Below are positions 31,478-34,313 of a stretch of DNA of 64,000 bases, one piece after another (position 1 is the stretch's first letter; each line of letters begins with the position of its first letter). A program made the translations under genes and the position numbers. The notes beneath the pieces are model-generated. The model did no database searches. It was not told the DNA's origin and was given only the letters and a program-made list of their open reading frames with translations. The stretch covers positions 1,591 to 65,590 of the forward strand of contig CDMY01000493.1 of NCBI GenBank assembly GCA_001179505.1, written 5' to 3'. Source of the stretch: Vitrella brassicaformis CCMP3155. Lineage: Eukaryota; Protista; Chromerida.

Positions 31478-34313
31478 TCAGGTTGACGGCACAGTGACTC
31501 CGAGGATGTCTGAAGCAATCTCGCTGATGTCTTCGATGCCCAGGATGGCGGCAAAGTCGGGGACGAGGATGTTGTCAGGAAGAATCTCACTCTCCCACAC
31601 GTAGGTGAACTTGCCCACGGTGATGGAGTAGAGGAACAGCCGGTCGCCCCCGTCGTCGATGAAGTCCACACCCACACCCACACTGCTCGTCTCCACCTCG
31701 GCGGACCCCTGCGGGACGCCGTCGTCGCCCACACCGGCACCGATCTGGGCGTAGACCTTGCCCAGCCGGCCGAAGCCTACTTGGCCGAATATCTCCTGAC
31801 TTCCCTCGGGGTCATCGTCGGGGAAATCGCCGTTGAGCACCAGCTGCCAACCGTCACCCCAGTTGCCTGAGTGAGTGGAGAAATGCAGCAACGAGTTAAC
31901 AATGTCTTGTCTAAATGCGTTGATGTCTGTCTGTCACTGTTCGTTCACCTTGAAAGTCAGTCTCTCTTTCGTCAAAGTCTCTGAGGACGGAGAACTGCCT
32001 CCCCAGTGTGCCGACGCTGACGGCGTACTCGGTGTCGTTGACGTCGGCACCGACGGCGACTGAGACGCTCCTCCAGCCCACAAACACCTCGGTGGCCAGC
32101 TCCTCATCGTCGTCGGTCGACGGGTCCTGCACGTCGTCGAAGTCATGCCGCACGGCCACCTCCACGTCGCGCACCTTGACCCGCTGGCCGTAGTCTCTGT
32201 CGGAGAAGTCGATGTTCGTCCCGGACTCCACCCCCCGCGCGACCACCTCCACAGCTGTCTGGGCATCGTCGAAGTCACGGTCGACTCTCACACCGTACGC
32301 GCCGTAGGAGACGCCCACACCGCCTTCAATGTCCGATTCGTCGGTCGACACGGACACCTGGGCCTTTCCGAAGCCGACGTTGGTCGATGTCGCTCGGTCT
32401 TCGAGGCCGACACCCACACCCACGTAGCCGTAGTCATTCCCCACCTGCACGGCCGTCTCTCTGTCCTCGAAGTCGCGGCCCCACGTGACCGCCCAGTTGT
32501 CGTACACAATCTCGTTCGACACCTCTTTAATCGGCTTGCCGCCCAACTCTTTGTCGGAATCGTATCGGAGCGTGTTGCTCCCCAGGAAGGCCGCGGCGAG
32601 GAGTGCCGCGGACACGGCCGCGCGGTCCTTCTCGTCCACTGTGTTGAGGAAGGTGCTGATCTGGCTGACGTCGCCGTTGGCCACCGCGAGGGCGGTCAGG
32701 ATTTGCTGTCGCTCCTCTGGGGGGATCTGGTTCAGAAACGCCGCGATGTCCTCGGCCGCGGCGTCGTCCTGCAGCATCTTTGTGACGACGTCGAGGGGGT
32801 CTTCTGTCACGCTTTTCGACGTTGACAACATCCGCTTCGCTGCGAGCACCGAGCCGGGCTTGAGGGGGCTGAAAGGGTTCTCCCTCTCCACTGTTCGCGT
32901 GGCTCCCAGTTTTCGCATTGATCCGAACTGCGCGAAGGCCGTGGGGCCCATCGCTGCTGCTTGGGCGAAGTGCGATTTCGGCTGTCGGCCCCAGGCACAG
33001 ATGCTCTCGACAGACGGCTTGGTGACGAAGGTGGCCATCATGCACGAGATTGTGTAGCGGTCGTAGTCCTTGAACATCATCGGACGCAAACTGAAGACAA
33101 TCTCAGCTTCTGCCAGGAAGACACAACACACAGAGAGAGTGGAATGCACATATCATATGGACGATCTGTGTGTGCGTGCGGGCTGGTGTCGATCAGCGCA
33201 CCTGAGTCCTCCGTCCCCCCGCCACTCTGCAGCTTGATGACTTTGAAATGCACGTCCTTGTTGATGGGACACCCATTGAGAATCAGATGGTACACGCAAC
33301 GCGGGTTGCTCGACTGTCGGCCCTCCGGACACACCGCCGTGCACTCCATCGGCCACGGCCAGACGTCCTCTCCCGCACCGTTGACCGTCGATTCGAAAAT
33401 CATCCCACTGACACGAGACGGAGAGACACAGACAGAGAGACGGGACAGATGAGGGGAGAGTGGCGGGCGGTCGCGTCGTCTGTCTCGCTCACTCGTCGTC
33501 ATTGGTGGTGGCAGTGTTGAATTCAGTGCCGCCGATCACCCCGGCAGAGAGCATGTGTCCCGTCACGGCGGCCTTGACGAACTTGGGCATCTTCTTGCTG
33601 CCCTCGTACGCCTCCTTCGACGTCGTCTTGTGCTCCCACTTGGCCGTCGCCAGACATCCGCCCGAGCCATCGCCCACCGGATCCGGCCGGTTGTCGTTGG
33701 TGCTCTGCAGCCGCCTTCTGTCCCCTTGAGCATTGGTGGTGCGTGGGCATGCGCATGTGATAATGGCGTTGTTCTCAGGGCCATGGACGCGGAGAACGTT
33801 GACATAGTACACGTACCTGTCCGTGACCGTCTTCTTGGTCTTGCACCCGTCGTACGTGGTCGAGGCCGCCAGTGCGTGTCGGCCCGGCCCGTAGAAGTCC
33901 TCCACCCAGTGGGCCACGCACCTCTTGTCGCTGATGGCGTCGTGGAAGCCTCCAGGGAACTTGCCCTCAAACGCGGGGTTGCGCGCCATGGGGACGGCCG
34001 CCGTCATCTTCTCGTCGGAGCACCACGCGCCTGGCGGCACCTTCTTGGGCAGGCCAGTCCTTTCCAGCCTCTCGCGATGGGAGATGTACTGGCTGGGGTC
34101 GAATTTGGCTTTCTGTGGCCCGCGCAGCTTCGGCCCATCTGGCTCGGGGACGCCTTTGATGGGTGGCGGTGGCGGTGGTGGCGGTGGTTGATATGGGCGG
34201 TCGGGGGGTGGAGGCGGCATGAAAGGACCGAGGAACGAGCCCCTGCCGGGGTCTGCACGGGCGATGATGGGCAGCAGGAGAGGCACGAGGACGCTGACAC
34301 GGAGACGGCCCAT
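31478..34313 (-). CDS. Secreted ZP (zona pellucida) module-like protein with a poly-Pro N-terminus and an acidic beta-repeat C-terminus; exons 34313-33493, 33407-33202, 33109-31949, 31866-31478 (2577 nt, 858 aa)
   Basis: Signal peptide MGRLRVSVLVPLLLPIIARA. Three phase-consistent GT-AG introns. ZP-N motifs CSDEKMTAAVP, ISDKRC, YDGCKTKKTVTDRYVYYVNVL and IITCAC. ZP-C motifs PMECTAV, YHLILNGCP and IVFSLRPMMFKDYDRYTISC. Confidence 0.85.

Follow-up and report, generated by a model that had tools for sequence, protein, structure and literature searches.

The zona pellucida (ZP) module, in which a ZP-N domain and a ZP-C domain are connected by a linker, serves as a structural unit of egg coats, the filaments of urinary uromodulin (UMOD), the tectorial membrane of the inner ear, and nematode cuticlins. 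In animals, the precursors of polymerizing ZP proteins, such as UMOD and ZP3, contain a furin-type site after ZP-C, followed by an external hydrophobic patch (EHP) and then by a transmembrane or glycosylphosphatidylinositol (GPI) anchor; the canonical disulfides of ZP-N connect C1 with C4 and C2 with C3. We analyzed a stretch of 64,000 nucleotides (hereafter, the window) of contig CDMY01000493.1 from the chromerid alga Vitrella brassicaformis CCMP3155, in which an initial annotation, made from the letters of the DNA, had proposed a ZP module encoded on the minus strand. That annotation described the module as generally regarded as metazoan, and a 2026 review indeed treats the canonical ZP module as a metazoan synapomorphy and, outside animals, refers only to choanoflagellates, in which the ZP-like domains are incomplete (PMC13361971). 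The analysis presented here points, with moderate confidence, to a secreted, Cys-rich chromerid protein with a divergent but genuine ZP module that would assemble into an extracellular matrix.

The rebuilt model of the gene consists of four exons and yields a protein of 858 amino acids, the length given in the initial annotation. Contigs assembled from an RNA-type run contain clean joints at introns 1 and 3, and at intron 2, a contig has a loose end of 16 nucleotides that matches the onward sequence of exon 2; therefore, the gene is real, transcribed, and spliced in accordance with the four-exon model. All three introns are of the GT-AG type, and two of the three split the ZP-C part, so that canonical introns interrupt the module, as originally described. 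A tblastn search with the family proteins identified a single copy of the gene in the window, and the annotated protein of this gene itself was absent from all database matches. The motif TGCATGCA, the only one examined for the proposed sharing of a local promoter, was not enriched.

The encoded protein belongs to a nameless chromerid/apicomplexan family. A phmmer search of 1.8 billion representative proteins with residues 60–273 retrieved only three proteins, with E values that included 1e-31 and 1e-24: CEM19602.1 and CEM06835.1 from V. brassicaformis CCMP3155 and, as a fragment, a protein from Selenidium serpulae, an archigregarine. Word-indexed searches seeded with these matches extended the set by three further paralogs from Vitrella (CEL95635.1, CEL94078.1, and CEM09749.1, referred to as P0004–P0006) along with three proteins that share the C-terminal domain, namely, GHVS01066643 from Rhytidocystis sp. 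ex Travisia forbesii (PMC10304595, PMC7522995), GHVT01005048 from Eleutheroschizon duboscqi (PMC10304595), and CSUI_000903 from Cystoisospora suis. The number of paralogs, which the initial annotation had left to be counted, is at least six in V. brassicaformis, the window gene included. The window protein is a distinct paralog, with 31–35% identity to the others over the module and 65–76% to the Vitrella paralogs over the C-terminal domain; in BLASTP comparisons with P0002, P0001, and P0006, E ranged from 1e-44 to 6e-76 for the module and from 1e-127 to 1e-154 for the C-terminal domain, that is, sequence homology is clear across both parts. The C-terminal domain shows 39–45% identity to the Rhytidocystis, Eleutheroschizon, and Cystoisospora proteins, with 45% for Rhytidocystis. 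The Rhytidocystis protein (P0008) contains the full module together with the C-terminal domain (hmmsearch E 2e-98, with this sequence itself among those from which the profile was built). Given that the same architecture is found in this apicomplexan, the family, on these hits, most likely predates the chromerid/apicomplexan split.

Two side observations concern members of this family. The Rhytidocystis protein contains a strongly hydrophobic segment upstream of the ZP module, long insertions both in the linker and within ZP-N, and, at a distance of about 120–190 residues past ZP-C, several polybasic sites (P0008 residues 102–120 and 340–800). Contigs of the DNA runs break at window positions 31557–32557 and contain clusters of variant bases there, probably reflecting cross-assembly with the 65–76% identical C-terminal domains of the paralogs and not allelic variation.

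Apart from this family, ZP modules are typically found in animals, and some apicomplexan transcriptomes were obtained from parasites that had been dissected from their animal hosts, so that metazoan contamination of the contig or gene, or its very recent acquisition from an animal, might be suspected. However, the phmmer search of 1.8 billion representatives yielded no animal protein; five paralogs are located on contigs of 60–396 kb in the published V. brassicaformis assembly; and the G+C content of the window, about 58%, equals the published value for the genome (supplement of PMC4501334). Furthermore, the gene has short GT-AG introns and is transcribed, the locus is evenly covered by DNA runs with contigs of up to 225 kb, and apicomplexans are the only other organisms in which the C-terminal domain was found. 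With relatives in Rhytidocystis and Selenidium, the protein is therefore not an animal contaminant; contamination is excluded for practical purposes, and a very recent animal transfer is vanishingly improbable. The initial annotation had likewise argued against contamination, and the host genome is that of a chromerid alga.

The evidence that carries the ZP assignment comes from predicted folds. The protein modeled with AlphaFold2 was P0006, the most compact paralog, which is 50% identical to the window protein in ZP-N and 44% identical in ZP-C; the alignment behind the model included the exon pieces of the window gene. The module-only model (P0006:75–365) has a predicted local distance difference test (pLDDT) score of 66.7, with 80–90 in ZP-N and 64–77 in ZP-C, and a predicted template modeling (pTM) score of 0.64. 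In a Foldseek search of the PDB, the best 23 matches were all ZP-module structures (ZPD, ZP3, UMOD, ZP3/ZP1, and endoglin), of which 17 were two-domain matches covering about 270–290 columns with both domains in order (E 1.7e-8 to 1.8e-6) and the next 6 were single ZP-C chains (E 5e-4 to 2e-3). The best 30 matches in AFDB Swiss-Prot were ZP proteins without exception (DMBT1, CUZD1, ZPLD1, tectorin, UMOD, GP2, ZP3, and ZP4), and the best 30 among the AFDB clusters were mostly named ZP proteins, the others being 7 nameless clusters, 1 EGF/discoidin protein, and 1 “Transmembrane protein” (A0A023B6M6). Comparison by VIA-align gave Z-scores of 7.1–9.3 for ZP-C [root mean square deviation (rmsd) 2.9–3.7 Å over 99–122 residues; GP2, UMOD, ZP1, ZP2, betaglycan, and endoglin] and, for ZP-N, a Z-score of 8.3 (rmsd 2.6 Å over 90 residues) with 8rki_C from a ZP3/ZP1 egg-coat filament entry, along with matches to ZP2 N-domains. 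ZP filaments again ranked first for a second, full-length model of P0006, and a search with this model that did not involve Foldseek ranked UMOD, ZPD, and ZP3 (Z 8.1–8.7) highest for the N-terminal half. Neither the 6-Cys/SRS fold nor that of oocyst wall proteins, both of which were considered, was among the fold matches. At the level of the predicted fold, the paralog thus appears to have the bipartite organization of ZP-N, linker, and ZP-C.

The protein A0A023B6M6 (713 amino acids; rank 17 among the AFDB clusters) matches the ZP model over residues 24–249 with E 1.2e-7. From its accession series, we presume that it possibly comes from Gregarina niphandrodes; if so, an anchored protein with the ZP fold exists in gregarines.

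The signals in the sequence are weaker and point the same way. All motifs on which the initial annotation was based are present in the translation: WCSDEKMTAAVP, ISDKRC, YDGCKTKKTVTDRYVYYVNVL, and IITCACP in ZP-N and MIFESTV..PMECTAV, YHLILNGCPIN, IVFSLRPMMF..RYTISC, and ESIC in ZP-C. Pfam was queried with four exon pieces of the window gene and with nine homologs, both whole and as domain segments. The ZP-C family PF00100, the gathering score of which is 24.6, matched exon 2 of the window gene over profile positions 59–91 of 133 (13.4 bits, E 0.083) and the isolated ZP-C segment of P0005 over positions 64–132 (19.4 bits, E 0.0012); the whole homologs yielded no ZP match. When the family ZP-C profile was compared with PDB sequences, the LI..GCP.D and F.F..F....C motifs aligned in register with those of ZPD (28yj_A, E 0.42). 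A match of the family profiles to galectin-5 in the same database, which outranked ZPD, was judged spurious. A phmmer search with the P0005 ZP-C segment returned nothing, and an ESM Atlas feature search yielded low-score leads for exon 1, with a ZP-N cluster at rank 17 and a GP2-like cluster at rank 53, and nothing useful for exon 2. The ZP signals in the sequence are individually insignificant yet agree in register and hence are weak but consistent.

The arrangement of the cysteines adds to this picture. As claimed in the initial annotation for positions 32990–34025, there are exactly 12 Cys (residues 98, 132, 157, 187, 189, 220, 296, 300, 311, 320, 365, and 380; nucleotides 34022–32997). All 12, with their flanking motifs, are retained in five Vitrella paralogs and the Rhytidocystis homolog, the sole exception being C3 in P0002; given this conservation, the pattern of cysteines and motifs is not a chance one. 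The ZP-N region contains six Cys, and so does the ZP-C span (approximately residues 276–380); the numbers expected of a ZP module are four and at least four, respectively. When mapped onto the P0006 model, four of the ZP-N cysteines fall on predicted strands (A, C, E′, and G): strand A carries C98 and strand G carries C187, with C132 and C157 in between, an arrangement that fits the canonical disulfides. The remaining two form an extra pair, in which C220, located on an additional strand, probably bonds with C189.

Several points weigh against reading the family module as a ZP module. No curated sequence model gave a threshold-passing ZP match for the family: the ZP-N family PF23344 matched no member, whether exon pieces, whole homologs, or segments were queried, and in none did ZP-C exceed the gathering score, so that profile searches of the kind proposed in the initial annotation produced sub-threshold ZP-C matches and nothing for ZP-N. 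The family profile of the whole module matched no ZP protein among PDB sequences. The modeled protein is a paralog, the alignment behind it is shallow, with 10–13 rows, and the pLDDT of ZP-C is only moderate. The TM-scores for the whole module are about 0.3 because the relative orientation of the domains differs, with per-domain values, normalized by target, of 0.5–0.6. Finally, the disulfide pattern is a prediction from the placement of Cys on the strands of the model. Some of these features would also be expected if the family consisted of Cys-rich immunoglobulin (Ig)-like sandwiches that came to resemble ZP by convergence, or through the pull of the prediction method, and shared no ancestry with animal ZP modules. 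The identity to animal ZP proteins in the fold alignments, 10–18%, is compatible with convergence, as are the failure of all curated hidden Markov models (HMMs) to pass the threshold, the spurious galectin match ranking above ZPD in the profile search, and the shallow alignment. Convergence would, however, have to account for two domains in the right order and for nearly exclusive ZP matches across four libraries, in agreement with the search that was independent of Foldseek. Generic Ig V-set domains reached a Z-score of 5.2 at best, about 3 Z units below the ZP matches; a generic Ig-like fold only, the outcome that the initial annotation had named as speaking against its proposal, is thus not what the paralog model displays. 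There are, in addition, the independent sub-threshold PF00100 matches of two family members in the same register, with the LI.nGCP and F.F..F...C motifs, and the canonical placement of the four ZP-N cysteines. On balance, convergence appears unlikely, and we infer homology with the animal domains: the family module is very probably a ZP module, on fold evidence that is strong but indirect.

Whether the window protein polymerizes is a separate matter, on which three further points stand on the opposing side. The window copy lacks a furin-type site after ZP-C, where the sequence WGRQPKSHF follows the last Cys and the only polybasic run in the protein is RRR at residues 199–201. A scan of the window protein and of seven family proteins (19-residue windows, mean Kyte-Doolittle hydropathy of at least 1.5) detected no hydrophobic anchor close to any C-terminus. 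In the full-length P0006 model, no strand past ZP-C docks as an EHP, in a region of low confidence. The “apparently complete” module of the initial annotation, therefore, stands with respect to the bipartite fold, as predicted for the paralog, but not with respect to a polybasic site after ZP-C, an evident EHP, or a C-terminal anchor. These absences are what would be expected of a true ZP module that does not polymerize and instead serves as an ectodomain for binding or adhesion or as a subunit with a capping or accessory function, in the manner of endoglin and betaglycan, the ZP-C domains of which are among the fold matches (Z 7.1–7.9). Such a role is a serious rival, even if we rate it as rather improbable: four of the five Vitrella paralogs contain (K/R)RRRR 8–10 residues past the final Cys of ZP-C, which is the position of cleavage in animal ZP precursors; filament-form ZP-C domains, those of GP2 and UMOD, rank highest among the fold matches; and the presence of multiple paralogs fits a hetero-polymeric matrix. 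Judging from the predicted fold, the set of paralogs, and the filament-form best matches, polymerization is plausible. If the window copy polymerizes without a polybasic site, an evident EHP, or an anchor, the control of this process must differ from that in animal precursors.

A related observation concerns the polybasic run of the window copy. It is part of D-RRR-LQ (residues 198–203; window positions approximately 33705–33722, minus strand), which is located in a loop specific to this copy (residues 191–219) and flanked by C189 and C220. The paralogs have the same motif, RRR(R)LQ, downstream of their ZP-C. In the window copy, it may represent a processing site that has moved into a loop, possibly one closed by a disulfide.

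Conservation within the family is highest in the C-terminal domain. In the full-length P0006 model, it consists of about 26 antiparallel strands with pLDDT of 80–88, and its fold matches are limited to generic beta-meanders (outer-membrane barrels, OspA, TCP10 G-box, and MORN). A membrane barrel was ruled out because the domain is hydrophilic and acidic. In C. suis CSUI_000903 and in the E. duboscqi transcript, this domain occurs without the ZP module.

The animal polymerizing ZP proteins (UMOD, GP2, ZP1–4, ZPD, and tectorins) share with the window protein, which is putatively secreted, the order of ZP-N, linker, and ZP-C, a cysteine count of at least four for ZP-N and six for ZP-C, and the motifs LI.nGCP.d and F.F..F....C, and they rank highest among its predicted-fold matches (Foldseek E 1e-8 to 1e-7; Z 8–9.3); the polybasic site just past ZP-C is a likeness to the Vitrella paralogs. 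The window family differs from them in the extra Cys pair and the extra strand after strand G of ZP-N, in its 10–18% identity with no HMM over threshold, in the fusion to the acidic beta-hairpin domain, and in its unicellular chromerid host; the window copy differs also in the lack of a polybasic site after ZP-C and of an evident EHP or a transmembrane or GPI anchor. Endoglin and betaglycan resemble it in having the ZP fold outside the polymerization logic of the consensus furin cleavage site (CFCS) and EHP, but are vertebrate membrane co-receptors of TGF-beta ligands, whereas the window protein has no transmembrane segment, and we know of no TGF-beta ligands in alveolates. The Vitrella paralogs and Rhytidocystis GHVS01066643 have the same architecture and the same 12 Cys as the window copy, which is set apart from its Vitrella paralogs by the missing RRRR after ZP-C, by the D-RRR-LQ loop, and by a helical-looking insert in the spacer. 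The choanoflagellate Salpingoeca rosetta is likewise reported to have ZP-like sequence outside animals (PMC13361971), but in Vitrella, both halves of the module are predicted, and Myzozoa are far from animals.

The features of the gene are collected in Table 1. By inspection, the first 20 residues resemble a signal peptide, with a basic n-region, then VSVLVPLLLPII, and then ARA/D. The insert in the spacer (approximately residues 445–520; window positions approximately 32580–32810, minus strand) is rich in Ala, Asp, and Glu, looks helical, and is specific to this copy, being absent from the paralogs; its only match was a weak one to MgtE_N in Pfam (E 0.12).

Table 1. Features of the ZP-like gene in the window (coordinates are window positions)
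Feature	Residues	Position	Strand	Basis
Complete coding sequence (exons 34313–33493, 33407–33202, 33109–31949, and 31866–31478, stop included)	1–858	31478..34313	minus	rebuilt model and RNA-type run X1
Predicted signal peptide (MGRLRVSVLVPLLLPIIARA/DPG)	1–20	34254..34313	minus	translation inspected by eye
Proline-rich tract	32–52	34158..34220	minus	translation
ZP-N-like domain	95–226	33636..34031	minus	strands mapped from P0006 model; ZP-N fold matches
ZP-N proper	95–190		minus	P0006 mapping
Extra strand CLATAKW, with C220	220–226		minus	P0006 mapping
Interdomain linker with conserved GH.LS strand	227–273	33493..33635	minus	family alignment; low model pLDDT
Intron 1, 85 nt, GT..AG		33408..33492	minus	joint 33407/33493 in run X1 contigs
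Exon 2, ZP-C-like core (MIFESTV, PWPMECTAVC, PRCVYHLILNGCPIN)	274–343	33202..33407	minus	weak PF00100 match; ZP-C fold matches, Z 7.1–9.3
Intron 2, 92 nt, GT..AG		33110..33201	minus	run X1 contig with loose end at 33112, running on into exon 2
ZP-C-like end (EIVFSLRPMMF, YTISCMMATF, ESIC)	344–380	32997..33109	minus	alignment and strand mapping
Spacer, without polybasic site	381–535	32535..32996	minus	translation, family alignment
C-terminal acidic beta-hairpin repeat domain, intron 3 inside	536–858	31478..32534	minus	paralog identity, P0006 model
Intron 3, 82 nt, GT..AG		31867..31948	minus	joint in run X1 contigs

The upstream neighbor of the gene is a multi-exon gene on the minus strand (window positions approximately 35020–37100), one exon-sized open reading frame (ORF) of which had no match in Pfam; eight long ORFs of the window other than those of the ZP-like gene likewise yielded none. 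A peptide of this neighbor, ..KWTSYLAIEKR.., is reminiscent of VIT/vWA-type proteins. Microsatellite-like (GGAT)n and (CAGA)n tracts are located upstream of the start of the ZP-like gene, and a (GT)n tract is located inside the neighboring gene (window positions 34560–34800 and 35660–35700).

In the scenario that we consider moderately probable, a secreted protein with a proline-rich tract, ZP-N, a linker, ZP-C with its six Cys, a spacer, and an acidic beta-hairpin domain of about 320 residues would, through its ZP module, self-assemble or co-assemble with its paralogs into an extracellular matrix, for example, a layer of the cell, sporangium, or cyst wall, with the C-terminal domain possibly acting as a spacer or as a wall-binding part. 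Alternatively, the window copy could be a non-cleaved accessory subunit of such a matrix.

We found no paper that links ZP modules with chromerids or apicomplexans, and ZP is not listed in the table of extracellular domains in the chromerid genome paper. What is new is a predicted ZP module in a non-animal lineage, with a new fusion partner and, in the window copy, without the canonical processing elements. The novelty is tempered by automatic annotation, which already calls two of the paralogs ZP proteins: P0001 and P0006, the paralogs with accessions CEM19602.1 and CEM09749.1, bear the UniRef label “ZP domain-containing protein,” so that some automatic rule fires on them, presumably one based on a PROSITE profile. 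It is conceivable, although we put this forward as a tentative and rather doubtful proposal, that the ZP-N/ZP-C polymerization module was already present in the chromerid/apicomplexan ancestor, by descent from early eukaryotes or by ancient transfer, and builds wall or cyst layers without an anchor or an EHP; identity of 10–18% does not discriminate between horizontal transfer and an ancient origin. If true, this would move the origin, or an ancient transfer, of the ZP module outside animals, into a free-living alga and several apicomplexan lineages, and would reveal a minimal, anchor-free system for the control of ZP polymerization. From the family, candidates could then be drawn for structural proteins of chromerid walls, which are poorly known, and of the cyst or oocyst walls of apicomplexan parasites.

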